64,000 nt of DNA from Antechinus flavipes (Eukaryota): assembly GCF_016432865.1 (NCBI RefSeq), contig NC_067400.1, forward strand, positions 629,176,001 to 629,240,000, written 5' to 3'. Each line of letters opens with the position of its first letter. Positions within the stretch are counted from its first letter, which is position 1. Below, piece by piece: positions 1 to 53,564 of the stretch. Made by a program: the position numbers and the translations under genes. The notes under the pieces are model-generated. The model had not been told where the DNA came from, made no database searches, and worked only from the letters and a program-made list of their open reading frames with translations.

Positions 1-731
1 TTCTCCAGAATCGTGCACAGCCCCACCCACAATGCACCAGTGTCCCGGTCCTCCCCACCCCCCCCAGGCCGGAAGGGACGGAGTCTTGGCTTGTGCAGAA
101 TCGGGTTTAGGTTTGGCAGAGCTGCACCAGCCGTGGGCCCGGCTCCTTCCCTGAGGGGCTGAAGCCCCGGCCGAGAGAAGCCAGGCGGGGGGTGGTCCCG
201 GCCCCTGCTCCAGCCGCCTCTGTGGCCCCGAAAGGAACTGCTCCCAATGGCCCATCTCAGCGGGGGCGCCTTCCCACTCTTGGGGCGGACGCGCCCGGCT
301 CCCAACGGCCGCAGGCCCGGTCCGGCCCCTCAGCCTGGCTCAGCCCGTTTGCCGGGGAGAGGGACGGCGCCGGGGGAGGGCTGGGCCCCGGACGGATGAG
401 CAGCCCCTCCCCAAACGCTCCGCAGCCCCCAGTGCAGAGGGAAGGCACGAAGGGAGGGGGGGGCTCTCGTAGAAAGGAGGACTCCAGTCACGGCTTGAAG
501 GGAGCCAGGGGACGGAGCAGGGCCAGAACCTCAGCCGTGAGGGAGCTGCAGAAAGGCCTGATGGGAAGGAAAGTCCCGCAGTGACTGCGGGCGGGGGGCC
601 CAGGCAGACACCCCGGAATGGGGGGGGGGCAACAGCCAACCTGGGGTCTAGGAAGGCGCTGGGGCAGCTGAGGGAGGGAGGAGCTGGGGGGAGAGGCCCG
701 GGAGCAGCCGCCAGAGGGCTCAGAGGATTAC

Positions 732-807
732 CTGGGGCGTCCAGGTCCTTCTCGGCTGCGCAAAGCGGGAACCGGGCTGTCAGTTCCCCGGCCTCCCTGC
801 GTCCCCG
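732..807 (-). repeat. Inverted dispersed copy of the SHISA7 intron 3/exon 4 junction (candidate 24-nt microexon 755-732)
   Basis: The reverse complement of 738-800 matches 14940-15004 with 1 substitution and two 1-nt C-run deletions. AG at 757-756, GT at 731-730. Confidence 0.9.
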
Positions 808-829
808 ACCACAGGGTGATAGTAAGACC

Positions 830-905
830 CGGGCTGACCCGGAGGCTGACCCAGAGACTGACCCGGAAGCTGACCCGGAGACTGACCCGGAGGCTGACCC
901 GGAGG
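830..905 (+). repeat. 12-nt tandem repeat (RCTGACCCRGAR), about 6 copies
   Basis: gctgacccggag/actgacccggag units seen directly. Confidence 0.9.
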
Positions 906-949
906 CCAGAAGAGGCGGGAGGGAGAGGATGAGTTCAGGTGGGACATTT

Positions 950-2574: not shown

Positions 2575-4850
2575 GCTGCTTCCCTCTCCCCCACGGCCAT
2601 ACCCTTCCCCGGGGCCCCATCCCTTCTGCTTCTCTCATCCCTTCTCTCCTCCATCCCTTCTCCCTTTATCTTCTCTGGCTTTTCTTCATCCCTTTCTCTG
2701 TCCCTAGCCTTTTCTCCACCCCCTCCCCATCCCTTCTGCTTCTCTCTCATTCCCTCTCACTTTCTCTTCCTCTTTTCTTTCATCCCTTTTTCTCATAGCC
2801 CCCAGCCTTTTCCCTCCCTCCCTGTCCTATCTCTTCTCTCTCATTCACTTCCATCCTCCTTCCCTTTCTTCTCTTTTCCATCATCCCTTTCCATCCTAGT
2901 CCCTAGACTTTTCCCTCCCTTCCTGTCCCACCCCTTCTCTCTTCCATGCCCTCTCTTTCTTTTCTATCTCCTCTTCTCCATCTTTTCTCATTCCTTTCTC
3001 TCCCATCCTTAGCCTTTTCCCTCCCTCCCCAATTCCCCTTTTCCTCTCCTCCATCTTTTCCCTTTCTTCTCGTCTCTTTTCCACCATCCCTTTTTATCCC
3101 AGTCACCAGTCTTTTCTCTCCCTTCCTGTTCCATCTTTCCTTCATCCCTTCTCTCCATCCTCTTTCCCTTTCTTCTCTTTTTCATCATCCCTTTCTTTCT
3201 CAGTCCCTAACCTTTTTTTTCCCCCATCTCTTTTGCTTTTCACCTCCTTCTTTCCTCCATCCCTTCTCCCTTTCTCTTCATCTTTTTTCTCATCCCTTTC
3301 TCTCCCAGTCCCTAGCCTTTTGTCTCCCTCCTCTTTCCTTCTGCTTTTCATCTCTTTCCTTTCTCCATTTCTTCTCCCCTTTTCCTCCTCTCTTTTCCTT
3401 CATCCCTTCCTCTCCATCCCATTGTTTTCTCTCCTCCACCCTTTCTCTCTTCCTTTCTATCTCCTTTCCCTTTCTCCGCTTTTCTTATTCCTTCCTCTCC
3501 CAGTCCCTAGCCCTTCCCCTCACTCCCCATTTTCCTTCCTCCTTTCCTCCATCTTCTTTCCCTTTCTGTTCTTTCCCCTCATCTATTTCTCTCCCAGTCC
3601 CCCCTTTTCTCTCCCCATCCCATCACCTTTTCTTATTACCCTCTCTCCTCTACTTCTCCTCTCTTCTATCCCCTTCTCTCCTCTATCCCCTCTCCCTCTC
3701 TCTATCTTTTCTCTCATCCATTTCTCTGTCCTTAGCCTTTTCTCTCCCTCCTCATCCCTTCTGCTTCTCTCATCCCCTTCTCTCTTCCATTCCCTCTCCT
3801 TTTCTCTCTCTCTCTTTTTCATCCCTTTCTCTCACAGTCCCCAGTCTTTTCCTTCTCTCATTCACTTTTCTCCTCCGCCCCTTCTTCCATTCCCCCTTTC
3901 TTTTCTATCTCCTCTCCCTTTCTCTTCTCTATCTTTTCTCATTCCTTTCTCTCCCCATCCCTAGCCTTTTCCCTCCATTCTCTCATTCCCTTCTCTTCTT
4001 CACCCTCTTCTCTCCTCCATCCTGTTTCCCTTCTTTTTCATTATCCCTTTCTCTCCCAGTCCCCAGCCTTTTCTCTCCCCCCATGTCCCATCTCTTCTCT
4101 CATACATTTTCTCCATTCCCTTTCTCCTTTTCCTTCATCCCTTCCTCTCCATCTCATTTTCTCTGTTTTCTCTCCTCCACCCTTTCTCTCTTCCTTTCTA
4201 TCTCCTTTCCCTTTCTCCGCTTTTCTTATTCCTTTCTCTTCCATCCCTAGCCTTTCCCCTCCCTCCCCATTTCTCTTCCTCCTTACCCTCTTCTCTCCTC
4301 TATCCTTTCCTTCTCTTTTCCCGCATCCCTATCCCAGTCCCTAGCCTTTTCCCTCCCTTCTCTTCTCTCCTCCATCCTGTTTCCCTTCTTTTTCATTATC
4401 CCTTTCTTTCCCAGTCCCTAACTTTTTCTTTTCCCCCTCATCCCTTCTGCTTCTCTCATCCTCTTCTCTCCTCCATCCCTTCTCCCTTTCTCTTCTCTCT
4501 TTTCCATCACCCCTTTCTATCCTAGTCCCTAGACTTTTCCCTTCCTTCCTGTCCCATCCCTTCCCATTCCTTTCTCTCCTCCATCCTCTTTCCTTTCTCC
4601 CCTTCTCTCATCCCTTTCTCTCCCAGCCCCCAGCCTTTTCCCTCCCCATCCCATCTCCTTCTCTCCCCTTCTCCTTTCTCCTCCACCTCTTCTCTCTATC
4701 CCCTTCTCTCCTCCATCCCCTCTTCCTTCTCTCTTTTCCTTGATCCCTTTCCCCCAGTCCCATTTTTACTCCTCCCAGCCCCCTTCTCTATTTGCTCATC
4801 CTCTTCTCTTTCAGTCCCACGTCTCCTCCCTTTCTTTCTCCTCCTACTCT
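2575..4850 (+). repeat. About 2.3 kb CT-rich degenerate satellite (polypyrimidine/polypurine tract)
   Basis: Very few G on the top strand; recurring cccagtccctagccttttc motif. Confidence 0.95.
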
Positions 4851-5097
4851 ATCCTTAACACTGGAGAACTGCAGTTCAGAGAGTTTGCAACATCAAAGCC
4901 ACCCCACCCCCATCCCTACCCATTTTCTAGAGGGAAAAGCTGAGGCCTAAAAAAGAGCAGGGGTTTGCCCAGAGCCAGACAATGTCTCCAGGGGCGGAGA
5001 GGGGCCTTCAGCTGGGGTCTCTGTGTGTGCTGGGGGGTGGAGGTGGGGGCAGAAGCCTGTTTCTCTTCCTTACCCCCTAGCGCCTGGAGGCAGGGCA

Positions 5098-5990
5098 ATG
5101 CATCCTGGCACGCCGGCGGCCTCCTGGCTCCCTGAGCCCGCACCCCAGGAGCTGTGCGCCTTCATGAGCGGGGTGGCTGCCCAGATCCTAAAGACCCTGC
5201 AGCCTCGGAAGACTCGGCCCCCCCGGAGAAAATCCACCCCGCGGAGATTCCCCTACAGTCCTCCGTACAGGTGAGAACTGGACCAAGGGCCCGCGGGGCA
5301 GCGGGGAGAGAAATGGGCGAGGTCAGAGACACGTCGAGTCAGATGAACAGGCCCGCGGAGGGGGGAAGAAACTGACCCTGAGAAGCAGGGACAGAAATAG
5401 AGACCAAGGGCCGGGCACAGCAAGGCACGGAGCCAGGCTCCGCGAGGATGGGGATGCGGAGGGGGCGGGACACGTGGGGCCACGGCATGGGGGAGGGGCG
5501 GTGCAGACCCCAGGCGGTGACCCAGCCCCTCCTCCCCGATCTACCCAGGAGTTCTGCCCACTGCCAGGACGCCACCCAACGGTGGGCCCGGGAGGGCCCA
5601 GGCCCCCAGGCCAGGCCCCGGCTCCCACGGCCGCCCTCCCCCTTCCTTGGGGTGGCCCAGGCCCTGGCGGCCCCCGAGAGTCCGGGCCCGGGGCTGGCCC
5701 TGAGTGCCTGGGATCTGCAGAGCCCGACGCACGAGCTGGCGGAGATCGTCCCTTTGGGCCCCGGGCCTTCCCTTCTTCCTGCAGTTACCGAAGACTCCTC
5801 CGGGTTTGTCCAGCTGCCCCCCGACCCCTCTGAGCCGCCGCTAGTGACTCTCCCCCCAATGATCGCAGATACCCAGGACCCAGGACCGTGCCCCACTATG
5901 GCCCGGGGGTCTCGGAAAGGGCCCCTGGCTGTGGGGACGTGGGTCCCGTCCTGCGGGAGCCCGGAGCTCTCCCGCCCCCTCCTCTGCTAG
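5098..5990 (+). CDS. C19orf85: C19orf85 ortholog, 204 aa, 2 coding exons (5098-5270, 5549-5990)
   Basis: MHPG...QELCAFMSGVAAQILKTLQPRKTRPP, ATQR and PPSPFLGVA match recalled human C19orf85. Phase-2 GT/AG junction gives 615 nt. Position next to ISOC2 is syntenic. AATAAA at 6054. Confidence 0.8.
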
Positions 5991-6789: not shown

Positions 6790-8984
6790 ATGGCCGCAGC
6801 CCGCCCGGCCCTGGGCCGCGTGCTGCCCGGCTCCTCCATCCTCTTCCTGTGCGACATGCAGGAGAAATTCCGAGGCGTCATCTCCTTCTTCCCTCAGATC
6901 GTGGCCGTGTCCGCCCGCATGCTCCAGGTGCGGGCCCCGCCCCAGCTCTCTACCTGCCTGGCCAGGTTCTGGTACCACCTGAGCCCCCCCCCCCCCCGCA
7001 GGTATCTGGTACCACCTGAGCTCCCCAGGTGTCTAGTAAAATCTGACCCCTCAAGTGTCTGGTACCACCTGGCCTCCCAGGTGTCACCCTGACACCCCTA
7101 TTCCCACTCCCACCCCCCTGTCTAGTGAAATCTGACCCCTCGTGTGTCTGGTACCACCTGACCCCCCACCCCCGCAGGTATCTGGTACCACCTGAGCTCC
7201 CCAGGTGTCTAGTACAACCTGACCCCTCAAGTGTCTGGTACCACCTGAGCCCCCCAGGTATCTAGTACGTGACCCCTCAGGTGTCTGGTACCACTGGAGC
7301 CTCCCAGGTGTCTGGTACTGCCTGACCCCACACCCCACCCCCACTCCCATCCCCACCCCCACCGTCTAGTAAAATCTGACCCCCTCAGATGTCTGGTACT
7401 ACCTGATACCCCCAGGTGTCTGGTACTACCCGAGTCCCTCCAAATAATTGGTACCTGAGCCCCCCAGGTGTCTAGTACAACTGAACCCCTCAGGTGTCTG
7501 GTACTACTTGGGCCCCTCCAAATAACTGGTACCTGAGCCCCCCAGGTGCCTGGTACCACCTGGCCCCCCTCTAACTGTTTTATCCTCACCTACCCCCCCA
7601 CTGTCATTCCCACCTGACTCCCCCTCCAGGTGTCTCGTCCCCACTTGACCCCCCACTTGTCCCCTGACCGCAGGTGGCCCGCGTGCTGGACATCCCCGTG
7701 ATGCTGACAGAACAGTACCCCGAGGGCCTTGGTCCCACAGTGCCAGAGCTGGGGGCCCAGGGCATCCGAGCCGTGCCCAAGACGACCTTCAGCATGGTGG
7801 TGCCCGAGGTGGAGCGGCTGATGAAGGCCAAGCCGGGCCTGAAGTCGGTGCTGCTGTGCGGCATCGAGGCCCAAGCCTGTATCATGGTAGGCCCCCCCAC
7901 CCCCCCCCCATGTCAGGTAGACCCTTGGGGTCGGCCCTGACCTCTGACCACTCCGCAGAGCACAGCCCTGGACCTGCTGGAGAGAGGCCTGGACGTGCAC
8001 GTGGTGGCCGACGCCTGCTCCTCCCGAAGGTCAGTGAGCCGGTGCGGAGGGGCCCAGATCTGGGGGGCACTTGTGCAAAGAAGTAAATGAGGGAGTGGAC
8101 TGTACCACCTGGCCCCCGGGTGGAGGGGAGGCCCCAGCGCGGCCGGAGCCCACTCCCCTTTGGACTGAACCAGCAGGCAGCCAGAAGAGGGAGGAGAGGT
8201 CCGGCTTCATCCCCCAACAGAAGTAAGCTCTGGTCCCGGGGTTACTGCTGTCAGTGTCACAGGCCTGCGCAGGATCCGCACCTTGTCCCTTCCTTGGCTC
8301 CCTCACAGAAGTCTGGACCTTCTAGCAGCACTCCCCTCCCCCAACCCGGGGCTCCTGGCCGTCAGCCCTCTCCTCCCCAAACCCATGTCGTTTGCCTCCC
8401 CCGGCCTAGCACTGTGCCCGGTACACAGCTGGAGCCTAATGGGTGTTGCTGTAATTCTGAGAGATCGGTCATCCAGCCACACTCCCGCCCCCATTTCCGA
8501 GAGCGAGGCCGGAGCCCAGGTCACCCAGCCCAGAGCCACCCCATCTCCCACCGTGGGGGAGGTGAGAGAGATCTCCAGGCGCTGTCACCCCACCCCCACC
8601 TCACTTCCTCTTCCAGTCAGGTGGATCGGTTGCTGGCTTTGTCCAGATGCGCCAGAGCGGGGTCTTCCTCACCACCAGCGAGTGCCTCATACTGCAGCTG
8701 GTGGGCGATTCTGCCCATCCCCGCTTCAAGGAGGTAACTCTCCCCCAGGCACTGGGCTCCCCTCCCCTCCCTCCTTGGGCCTGCAGCTCCCTCCCCCAAT
8801 CCTGCGCTCGGCCCCGGGGGTTTATTCCTCCACTCTTCCTCTTCCTCTCTCTAGCCCACTCCTCCTGTCTCCACTTCTCCCCACTTCTTCCTCTTCCCTC
8901 CAGGTGCAGAGATTCATTAGGGAGCCAGCCCCCGATAGCGGCCTCCTCGGCTTGTTCCAGGGCCAGAGCCCCCTCCTCAGCTGA
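6790..8984 (+). CDS. ISOC2: Isochorismatase domain-containing 2; coding exons 6790-6927, 7674-7886, 7959-8029, 8617-8733, 8904-8984; 1-nt deletion near 8646 in exon 5
   Basis: [69 protein letters not shown] and [15 protein letters not shown] match ISOC2. Exon 5 is 117 nt where 118 is needed to keep frame. AATAAA at 9250. Confidence 0.95.
6960..7635 (+). repeat. ISOC2 intron 2 minisatellite (about 26-30 nt units, gtgtctggtaccacctgagccccccag)
   Basis: Seen directly; many GGTACC and CAGGT motifs. Confidence 0.95.
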
Positions 8985-11796: not shown

Positions 11797-15642
<3,846 letters not shown>

Positions 15643-49119: not shown

Positions 49120-49555
49120 TTCTGTCCGTCTCCCTCCCCTCTTTCTCCCTCTTTCCCTCTTCCTCCCTCTCTCCCTCCCCTCCGTCTTTCTCCTTTCTCC
49201 TTTTTCCCTCTCCTCTTTCTCCTTCCTCCTTTTTCCTTCCCTCCCTCTCTCCTCCACCTCATCCCTCCCTGCCTCTCCCTCCCCCTTTCGCCCTCTCCCC
49301 TCCTTTATTCTTCCCTTTCTCCTTACTTCCTTCCCCTCCTTCCCTCCCCCTTTTTCCCTCCCTCCCTTTCTCTTTCACCCATCCCTCCTCTTTTACACAC
49401 ACATCCCACCCTTCTCCCTCTTCTCTCTCCCTTTCTCCTTCACTCCATCCCTCCTCTTTTACACACACATTCCCACCTTTCTCCCTCTTCTCTCTCCCTC
49501 CCTTTTTTCCTCCCCCGCCTTTCTCTCCCTCCCTCCCACTTTTCTCCTTTCCCTC
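49120..49555 (+). repeat. CT-rich low-complexity tract
   Basis: Seen directly. Confidence 0.9.
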
Positions 49556-51006: not shown

Positions 51007-53564
51007 ATGGACAGTAAGTTCCCTCGAGTTCATAGGGAGCGGGGCAGAGGGAGGGAGGAGGGAGGGACCCCGGGCCGAGGGGGAGCACACGGGGAGGGGG
51101 AGAGAGGCAGGCGGAGGGAGATGAATGAATGAGACAGGAGAAGGTGGGACCCGCAAGCTGCCAGGTAGGGCAAGGTGAAGGCAGTGGAGGGCCCAGAGCC
51201 GAAGGGGAGCCGCAGCCAGCCGGAGGGAGCACCGGGGAGCCCAGACACGGGGCGAGAGGGCCGGGGACAGGGAGCCACAGCCAGCCGGAGGGAGCACCGG
51301 GGAGAGAGGGAGCACCCGGGAGAGAGGGAGCACCCGGGAGCCCAGACCCGGGGCGAGAAGGCCAGGGAAAGAGGGAGCCAGGCAGTGAAGCGGAGGTGAC
51401 GAGCCCCCGAGAGAGCAGAGGCCCAGGAGAGCTGGGGACAAATGGTCAGGCAGCAGCAGAACGCAGACCCAAAGAGGCCCGGCCAGAAGGACCCAGAGAT
51501 AGAGCAAAGACACTCTGGGTGACAGGGAAAGGGGAGGAGATGGGAGGGGAAGGAGGCTGGGCTGTGGGGGAGCCTCTGATTGGCTACGTTGGGCATGAGG
51601 GGGTGGGGGTTCCCCCAGGGCTGAGCCTAGGGCTAGGGAGTGGGGTGGGGGGGAGAGTCTCGGCTTTGGTTTTCTTGCAGTCTCTCTCAGCTCTGTCCCT
51701 CTCACTCCTTAGATGTCCTTTCCCGATCCTATCTCGGGAGCTGTGCCCCTCTCACTTCCCAGGTCTCTCCCCAGTCCTGCCTCAGTGGCTCTGTCCCTTA
51801 CCTCTCCATTAGGCTGCCTTGTACCTGTTCACTTTTGCCCTAGCTCCGGGGCCTGGGTCTGTGTGGCCTTTGCACCTGCTTCTTGTTCTGGCCCAGGCTG
51901 GCCTTTCTNNNNNNNNNNNNNNNNNNNNNNNNNNNNNNNNNNNNNNNNNNNNNNNNNNNNNNNNNNNNNNNNNNNNNNNNNNNNNNNNNNNNNNNNNNNN
52001 NNNNNNNNNNNNNNNNNNNNNNNNNNNNNNNNNNNNNNNNNNNNNNNNNNNNNNNNNNNNNNNNNNNNNNNNNNNNNNNNNNNNNNNNNNNNNNNNNNNN
52101 NNNNNNNNNNNNNNNNNNNNNNNNNNNNNNNNNNNNNNNNNNNNNNNNNNNNNNNNNNNNNNNNNNNNNNNNNNNNNNNNNNNNNNNNNNNNNNNNGTCT
52201 CTCCCTATTCTCCCTACGTCCCCATGTCTCTGAGTTTCTGCTCCCGCTTCTCTTTGCCCCAGTGTCTGAATCCCCACGTTTCTGAGCTTCTCCTACGGAG
52301 TGTGGAGGCAGCTGAGCCCGCGCCTGGGGCTGTTGAGGGGGGCGGCGCCGGGCCGCTGCCCCCGCAGTCTGTGTCTAGAGCCCGGGCTGGGGGTGGGTGG
52401 GACTCGGGCAGAGACAGACACATACACAGAGACAGGGAGACAGGAATAATCTGAAACAGAGACACGGAGAGATCTTGCCCCCGACTGGATCTCCCCGCTG
52501 GTCCTGGACTCGGGGGGGGGGGGGCAGGGGTGTGGGTGTCTGCGGACTGGGGGGTGCGGGCGGCAGGTCGTGGCCTGCACCTCCCCCCTGCCCCCCACCC
52601 CTTAGGGCCGGGATTCCGGCGTCCGGGGGCGGAGGGAGACGCCCGGCCCGTCTGCTTGCCCCGGGCCGCGTCTGCTCTGCTGGGCGGGGCCCCTGCCTTC
52701 GAGGGAGGAGGGGAGGGAGCCTGATCCCCAGCCCGCCCCCTCAGGGCCCCAGCCTCCGCGGCCCCTCCGCCCGGCTGCGAGGTCCCAGGAGTCCCGGCCC
52801 CTCTCTCCCGAGCTCTGCCTTAGCCCGTCGCTCCCCGTGGCTGTTTCCTTCCCCCAGGTTTGTGCCGCGTAGTCCTGGCCGTGCTTAGCCTGTGGCCCAA
52901 CCGAGCTGGGGCCTCAGCACCCCCCGTGCCCCCCGGGTCTCCCCGCGGCGCCCCCGTCCCGGGCCCAGGGGAGTCCCGAGCTGAGCTGGACAGCGCCGTG
53001 CTCCTCACCCGGGGGCTCCTGAGAGAAACCCGGCAGCTAGCCGCTCAGCTGGTGAGACCCCGCCCCCTTCTCTTCTCTCCTCCCTCCTCCCCCCTCCCCA
53101 TCTGTGCTCGCCTAGGAAAGAAAGCAGCGGGCCCCCGGCACCCAGAGAGCTGGGGCGGGAGACAGAGACACCCAGAGACCAAGAGGTGGGTCAGCGAACG
53201 CAGAAAGGAGAAAGCCGAAGCAAGCTAGGAGGGGGGAGGGGGAGAGATCGGGAGGGAGGGAGGGACAGAGGGAGGGAGAGAAAAACTGAGAACGAGATTG
53301 ACAGACAGAGAAATTGAGAGATAGAGAAGAAAACAGAAACAGAGGAGAGGGGAGAGAGAAACAGGAGAGGGAGGGGGAGAGAGAAACAGGAGAAAAAAGG
53401 GGAGAGAAACAGGAGAAAAGGGAGAGAGAAACAGGAGAGAGAGAGAGGGGAGAGAGAAGAGAGAGAGGAGAGAACAGAAGAGAGAGAACAGAAGAGAGAA
53501 ACAGGAGAGAAACAGAGGAAAGAGAGGGGAGAGAGAAACAGGAGAGGGAGGGGGAGAGAGAAAC

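Follow-up and report, generated by a model that had tools for sequence, protein, structure and literature searches.

Class 2 templated sequence insertions (class 2 TSIPs) show a signature comprised of a deletion, an inserted patch, and untemplated bases, with neither a target-site duplication nor poly(A) (PMC5110952), and they have been proposed to be RNA-derived, arising at repaired double-strand breaks (Onozawa et al.; PMC5110952). Templated inserts are also associated with other repair processes: an inverted templated insert is a signature of MMBIR, and the definition of the corresponding insertions (MMB-TI) places the template within 100 bp, with microhomology at both junctions (PMC8421209). 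Pol-theta end joining, in turn, produces deletions of 7-13 bp with templated inserts and shapes heritable indels (PMC4490562). Typical templates of both Pol-theta and MMBIR lie within ~100 bp (PMC8421209, PMC4490562).

The insertion considered here is found in a 64-kb stretch of marsupial DNA (hereafter the window, meaning the whole stretch that was analysed) and appears to be closest to the class 2 TSIPs. It shares with them a short patch matching unique sequence from elsewhere in the genome (68/72 identity, unique in the window), an insertion missing from the ancestral allele (as seen in three relatives), the lack of a target-site duplication, poly(A) tail, or cryptic poly(A) signal, a micro-deletion of ~14 nt with possible GG microhomology and 3-6 untemplated nt, and an inherited, germline origin. 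It differs in that its template is only 14 kb distant along the same chromosome, indicating DNA in cis as the template in place of the RNA proposed for TSIPs, and in that its patch of ~70 nt is at the short end. With the MMBIR/FoSTeS insertions (MMB-TI) it shares the inverted orientation (copy on the minus strand, source on the plus strand), the same-chromosome template, the replacement of few target bases, and the repetitive DNA adjoining the insertion; in contrast to these, the template is 14.1 kb off, and there is a possible microhomology of 2 nt at one junction with filler at the other. The combination of a small deletion (~14 nt here) with a templated insert is likewise shared with Pol-theta end joining, the inserts of which, however, copy sequence near the break and are usually much shorter (PMC4490562). 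Given that the distance of 14.1 kb fits no narrow definition, we file the event under the broad kind, as a probable templated repair patch.

A further comparison is with the exonisation of transposable elements (e.g., Alu) and pseudo-exon activation, in which splice signals arise in non-exonic sequence, resulting in a potential cassette exon. The present locus is similar in that new DNA brings or creates splice signals for a potential new cassette exon, but here the signals come from the working acceptor of a nearby gene and not from a repeat or a point mutation. Moreover, documented exonisations have transcripts showing their use, whereas the candidate described below is known from sequence alone.

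The inverted SHISA7 copy and its source

The source gene is recognisable from an ORF (12044-13213) that matches SHISA7 proteins, with that of Sarcophilus harrisii as the best match (97% identity). Its coding exons, located by tblastn with the Sarcophilus protein, show 96-100% identity per exon (Table 1), and the exon map drawn from that protein identifies the copied junction as that between intron 4 and the last coding exon, which starts at 14984. The source segment is conserved in Sarcophilus and Sminthopsis. Downstream of the copy, ISOC2 follows after 6 kb and the SHISA7 start codon after 11.4 kb, with the source acceptor at a distance of 14.1 kb.

Local alignment of the minus strand of 807-738 with the plus strand of SHISA7 14934-15004 yields 68 identical positions in 72 columns, the remaining columns being accounted for by an A/G mismatch, a 1-nt gap in each of two C-runs, and an A that is present in the copy only; with slipped ends the copy may span 736-810. 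For the shorter interval 738-800, the original prediction had given 62/63 identity plus two C-run indels, and the alignment returns the same count. The match is detected with E 3e-23 in an in-window blastn search using a 3-kb query and with E 7e-22 when the whole 64-kb window is compared with itself, a comparison in which this pair is the sole non-local match of at least 40 nt at 88% identity or above. Homology extending beyond the 70 nt was considered and rejected: the 190-nt flanks on each side are not significantly alike between the copy and source sites, and both score at the shuffle level (the observed score is reached by 11/300 shuffles for the upstream flanks and by 163/300 for the downstream ones). 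As the flanks are no more alike than shuffled sequence, the copy is therefore a discrete block.

Read on the minus strand, the CTGAC motif, the pyrimidine tract, the AG, and the start of the exon are all found within the copy where they had been predicted. Directly after the AG comes the exonic part, CCGAGAAGGACCTGGACG, followed by CCCCAG/GTAATC (the slash marking the potential splice site). The pyrimidine-rich tract is shortened in the copy by two C deletions, with CCC at two places where all three source orthologues have CCCC. The proposal that the copy is not part of a transposable element also held up, as it is a lineage-specific insertion with two copies in 64 kb, one of which is the conserved coding-exon junction. 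A dispersed repeat was rejected on the same count of only two copies, together with the finding that the loci of the relatives carry just the SHISA7 acceptor copy. An Rfam scan of the window matched no family.

Table 1. Coordinates of the insertion, its flanks, its source, and the neighbouring genes in the window
Feature	Position	Strand	Remarks
Conserved left flank, CAGAGGATTAC plus YTGG	721..735	+	marks orthologous site
Candidate donor GTAATC	726..731	-	pre-existing flank
Candidate 24-nt pseudo-exon, CCGAGAAGGACCTGGACGCCCCAG	732..755	-	sequence only
Inverted templated copy of the SHISA7 intron 4/last-exon junction	738..807	-	50 nt intron + 21 nt exon
Copied splice signals	756..783	-	CTGAC branch-point motif 783-779 (A at 780), pyrimidine-rich tract, AG 757-756
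Junction filler ACCACA	808..813	+	no template found
Conserved right flank, GGGTGATAG...	814..831	+	marks orthologous site
12-nt minisatellite GGCTGACCCGGA x 6.2	832..906	+	25 nt from insertion
ISOC2	6790..8984	+	next gene downstream of insertion
SHISA7 coding region	12242..15642	+	five coding exons
SHISA7 coding exons	12242-12931, 13535-13690, ~14222-14293, 14494-14643, 14984-15642	+	tblastn with Sarcophilus protein
Copy source	14934..15004	+	last 50 nt of SHISA7 intron 4 + first 21 nt of last coding exon (AEKDLDD...)

The orthologous site in other marsupials and the age of the copy

Using ISOC2 as the anchor for retrieving orthologous loci, we compared the 10 kb upstream of this gene in Sarcophilus (L003), Sminthopsis crassicaudata (L002), and Dromiciops (L004). 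The window shows 87-92% identity to the Sarcophilus locus (substitution divergence ~5-7%) and ~86% identity to that of Sminthopsis crassicaudata (~6.5-7.7%); these values put its lineage in Dasyurinae, nearer Sarcophilus than Sminthopsis. None of the three relatives (Sarcophilus, Sminthopsis, and Dromiciops) carries the copy at the orthologous site, which lies 6 kb ahead of ISOC2, and the sole match of the copy in each of these three loci is the species' own SHISA7 acceptor.

The site itself is delimited by two conserved flanks, each with a single occurrence in both dasyurid loci, namely CAGAGGATTAC (L003 3684; L002 4794) and GGGTGATAG (L003 3713; L002 4824), and both flanks are kept in Sarcophilus at L003 3684-3721 and in Sminthopsis at L002 4794-4832. 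The spacer between them in these two dasyurids is 18-19 nt long, reads TTGG followed by C or T, A or G, and TGGAGGCTTTGG, and is unrelated to the copy (TTGGCATGGAGGCTTTGG, 18 nt, in Sarcophilus; TTGGTGGTGGAGGCTTTGG, 19 nt, in Sminthopsis). In the window the spacer is 82 nt long and consists of CTGG, then GG, the copy, and ACCACA. Dromiciops aligns weakly at the site and has a related short spacer without the copy. Since the relatives keep the flanks with a short spacer that lacks the copy, the short spacer is the ancestral state, from which the window lineage lost ~14 nt and gained 78 nt (~70 of them the inverted SHISA7 copy) after its split from the Sarcophilus lineage. The emptiness of the site in three relatives strongly supports the central element of the original prediction, that a short templated duplication took an intact 3' splice site, and the dating by related marsupial genomes that it had proposed makes the insertion specific to the window lineage, after the Sarcophilus split. 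An old duplication with conserved cores was rejected, as the copy is missing from the orthologous sites and ancestral flank sequence extends as far as each junction.

The age of the copy can also be gauged by comparing it with the SHISA7 source in three species (that of the window, Sarcophilus, and Sminthopsis). The copy reads GGGGACGCAGG like the Sminthopsis source, and Sarcophilus also has ACGC, with the window's own source having a G at that A; 5' of CGCAGGG the copy has GGGGA, the same as the Sminthopsis source. Most simply, an earlier form of the source, before its change at this position, would have served as the template, although this 'ancestral A' argument depends on a single position, and the A would have another explanation if the copy were aligned with an internal deletion of 9-10 nt. 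Changes specific to the copy comprise a G>A (GGGGAACTGAC) and the two 1-nt C-run deletions, at all of which the three sources share the other state. The resulting 2 substitutions in ~70 nt (2.9%, with a very wide error), set against the ~5-7% divergence between the window and Sarcophilus, fit an insertion after the Sarcophilus split.

We also observed that the conserved reading frame of ISOC2 exon 5 (8600-8700) is broken by 1 nt in the window, where Sarcophilus reads straight through. Either 1 nt has truly been deleted or the assembly consensus is wrong here, and the break may account for the failure to find an ISOC2 protein of this species.

Junction anatomy and the probable route of repair

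Neither a target-site duplication nor poly(A) is seen at the junctions, GATTACCTGG/GG... on the left and ...CCCCG/ACCACA/GGGTGATAG on the right, and no flank is duplicated and no A-run is present at either. A class 1 TSIP or LINE-1 retrocopy was rejected, as the site has none of the features expected of one (a target-site duplication of 5 bp or more, poly(A), and a TTTT/A target). At the left junction (plus strand) the ancestral ...TTGG is followed by GGCGTCCAGG, the source in that orientation reading ...TAGGCGTCGTCCAGG; the copy may thus start at GGCGTC, with one GTC of the GTCGTC repeat skipped and the GG common to the target, such that the microhomology would be at most 2 nt (GG). At the right junction, ACCACA comes directly after the end of the copy (...CCTGCGTCCCCG); 3-6 nt are untemplated, and no second template for this filler (ACCACA / CTGGGG) was found within the window. 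Under the alternative alignment with a 9-10 nt internal deletion, the copy would be longer by GGTCGGG and the filler would be ACA only.

The minisatellite next to the insertion, GGCTGACCCGGA, is a possible fragile site. It is multi-copy in the window and in Sarcophilus too, with ~1.5 units in Sminthopsis, and has therefore expanded within Dasyurinae. SHISA7 intron 4 contains at 14851-14868 the sequence TCCGGGTCTCCTTCCGGG, a 16/18 match to two minisatellite units (minus strand of 832-906); this match is marginal (11/300 shuffles) and may be due to chance or may have helped bring both sites together. A role for it as the direct primer of the copying was excluded, because ancestral sequence lies between the minisatellite and the copy.

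We propose that a chromosome break or a stalled replication fork ~25 nt from the 12-nt minisatellite, 6 kb upstream of ISOC2, was repaired after the split from the Sarcophilus lineage with the loss of ~14 nt and the insertion of a 78-nt patch, ~70 nt of which would have been copied in inverted orientation from the SHISA7 intron 4/last-exon junction 14.1 kb off on the same chromosome. Most likely, a template switch led to synthesis on a DNA template, and the ends were then joined. An entire 3' splice site would, by chance, have been included in the patch and placed such that a GTAATC already present follows it after 24 nt, and the new junction would have converted CAA/GT to CAG/GT, giving a sequence-competent pseudo-exon on the minus strand. 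We consider it probable, with good confidence, that the copy is such a scar of one germline mutation, DNA-templated, and a functionally inert pseudo-exon. Against this explanation stand the distance of the template (14.1 kb), the minimal microhomology, and the fact that the copy is known from one assembly.

The last of these points raises the alternative that a chimeric read or a consensus error put an inverted SHISA7 fragment at 738-807. That the species is represented by a single assembly, that the same assembly has the 1-nt frame break in ISOC2 exon 5, and that both indels of the copy lie in C homopolymers would agree with such an artefact; given the ISOC2 frame break, the two C-run indels themselves could be consensus errors. 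The insert, however, replaces ~14 nt of ancestral sequence within collinear sequence, unlike assembly chimeras, and shows two substitutions relative to the assembly's own source, one of which is the ancestral state that the source has lost, suggesting that it was not taken from the present source sequence. The retained ancestral A and the replacement of ancestral bases within collinear sequence thus disfavour a chimera, and we regard an artefact as highly improbable. A somewhat less remote but still unlikely alternative is that the patch was made from RNA, with unspliced SHISA7 pre-mRNA or an antisense RNA being reverse-transcribed and captured at the break. It would be in keeping with the location of the fragment inside a transcribed gene and with the RNA derivation proposed for class 2 TSIPs, which have the same junction features (PMC5110952). 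Against it, a source only 14 kb off on the same chromosome is readily understood under copying from DNA in cis, and this nearness is why DNA in cis is favoured; mature mRNA, for its part, is excluded by the presence of an intron-exon junction within the piece. As SHISA7 is a neuronal gene, its pre-mRNA should moreover be scarce in the germline.

The candidate pseudo-exon and its transcriptional surroundings

The original prediction had described a 24-nt interval at 755-732 with a GT at 731-730, and the coordinates are as described. Its first 18-20 nt come from the SHISA7 exon and its last 4-6 nt are junction sequence, while the acceptor half is inherited from a site used in SHISA7. Sarcophilus and Sminthopsis read CAA/GTAATC where the window reads CAG/GTAATC, and only the G at -1 is new. 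With donors scored by an approximate position weight matrix, for which textbook frequencies were used, the candidate CAG/GTAATC reaches 3.0, with -0.3 for the ancestral CAA/GTAATC and 8.6 for the consensus; with the same approximate matrix the real SHISA7 and ISOC2 donors in the window score 0.0-4.7, a range within which the candidate falls. Because the donor lies in the local range and the acceptor derives from a used site, the pseudo-exon at 755-732 is sequence-competent by local standards. GT sites that score as well or better occur at 1.4-1.5 per kb per strand, and the chance expectation of such a donor within 50 nt of a random acceptor is ~7%.

ZNF628 had been suggested as the neighbouring host gene of a minus-strand transcript. 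This candidate did not survive, as neither the window nor the 10 kb preceding ISOC2 in Sarcophilus and Sminthopsis contains a C2H2 zinc-finger ORF. In the gene tables of these two species, which are for protein-coding genes, no minus-strand gene is called in the same 10 kb. A minus-strand ORF of 213 aa over the copy found no match in the protein collection searched, a result that says little either way. The CpG observed/expected ratio around the insertion is 0.48-0.56. Further away, a perfect palindromic CRE, TGACGTCA, is present at 2238 in the most CpG-rich 300 nt of the intergenic region; it is adjoined by 2293-2591, a segment with recurring TAATTGG motifs that shares 82% identity with Dromiciops, and 2100-2600 is probably a conserved regulatory element. 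A partly G-rich segment of 47 nt (1753-1799) matches Dromiciops (L004 6207-6253) at 94% identity, a value much higher than in its surroundings. The CRE and the conserved elements lie 1.5 kb from the copy, upstream on the minus strand, and the presence of these conserved non-coding elements and the CRE at that distance makes transcription possible.

Several other features of the region were observed in passing. A gene coding for 194-268 residues with no Pfam match is annotated immediately upstream of ISOC2 in the relatives (L003 8045-8883, L002 8459-9233, L004 7708-8853), corresponding roughly to 4800-5650 (plus strand) of the window, and may be the C19orf85 counterpart. Dromiciops additionally has a gene call for a 63-residue ACBP-domain protein (L004 800-991, minus strand) at a distance of 9 kb ahead of ISOC2, for which the dasyurid loci showed no equivalent. 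At 2615-4750 the window has a CT-rich, nearly CpG-free tandem array of 2.1 kb, the units of which repeat every ~101-111 nt and share ~70% identity; related arrays occur at ~49150-49520 and ~53330-53550, and 51909-52196 is a run of 288 N.

Two functional readings have to be set against inertness. If a minus-strand transcript, for instance a lncRNA or one with the far-upstream 5' UTR of a neighbouring gene, were to splice 755-732 as a lineage-specific microexon, this would be a case of exon birth, as the original prediction had suggested. The retention of the branch-point motif, tract, and AG of a used acceptor, a donor whose score of 3.0 is within the real local range and whose -1 G was created by the insertion, and the CRE at 2238 with the conserved 1753-1799 and 2293-2591 upstream on the minus strand are all consistent with it, as is the TGC just upstream of the AG, TGC-type motifs in this position being an accompaniment of neuronal microexons. 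An equally good donor, however, is found within 50 nt in ~7% of cases by chance, the pyrimidine tract, weak to begin with, is made shorter by the two C deletions, the CpG observed/expected ratio at the site is only 0.48-0.56, and Sarcophilus and Sminthopsis have no minus-strand protein-coding gene within 10 kb and no zinc-finger ORF. Furthermore, exons of 24 nt are poorly defined without dedicated enhancers. We hence consider exon birth very unlikely. The other reading turns to the plus strand, RNA of which over 738-807 might mask the SHISA7 last-exon acceptor in trans as an antisense regulator. While the complementarity of 68/72 covers the branch point, tract, and AG, and the C19orf85-like gene, ISOC2, and SHISA7 are all downstream on the plus strand, no gene is called upstream of the copy in the protein-coding tables of Sarcophilus or Sminthopsis, the copy shows no sign of selection, and trans-acting antisense is rarely effective at such stoichiometry; this makes it the least credible of the readings, and exceedingly improbable. 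Our best estimate is that the pseudo-exon is functionally inert, like most pseudo-exons, and inertness is favoured because chance donors are dense, no minus-strand coding gene is called, and the ORF has no protein match.

The duplication, then, is real and of an ordinary kind, with exon birth unlikely. Patches of this type can nevertheless move complete splice signals, which is a rarely discussed route to new exons; no literature joining 'exonization' and 'templated insertion' was found among the matches listed. If it is true that transcripts use the site, an exon would have been born through the transplantation of a splice site, with both the date of its origin and the ancestral allele being known, and this would be a directly testable case of the origin of an exon from a single mutation; only then would the event be important. 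The copy itself is a clean, dated natural example of a templated repair patch in a marsupial germline, for which a single 64-kb window reveals the source, target, ancestral allele, and junctions alike, and the insertion can serve both to illustrate such events and to mark the lineage phylogenetically.
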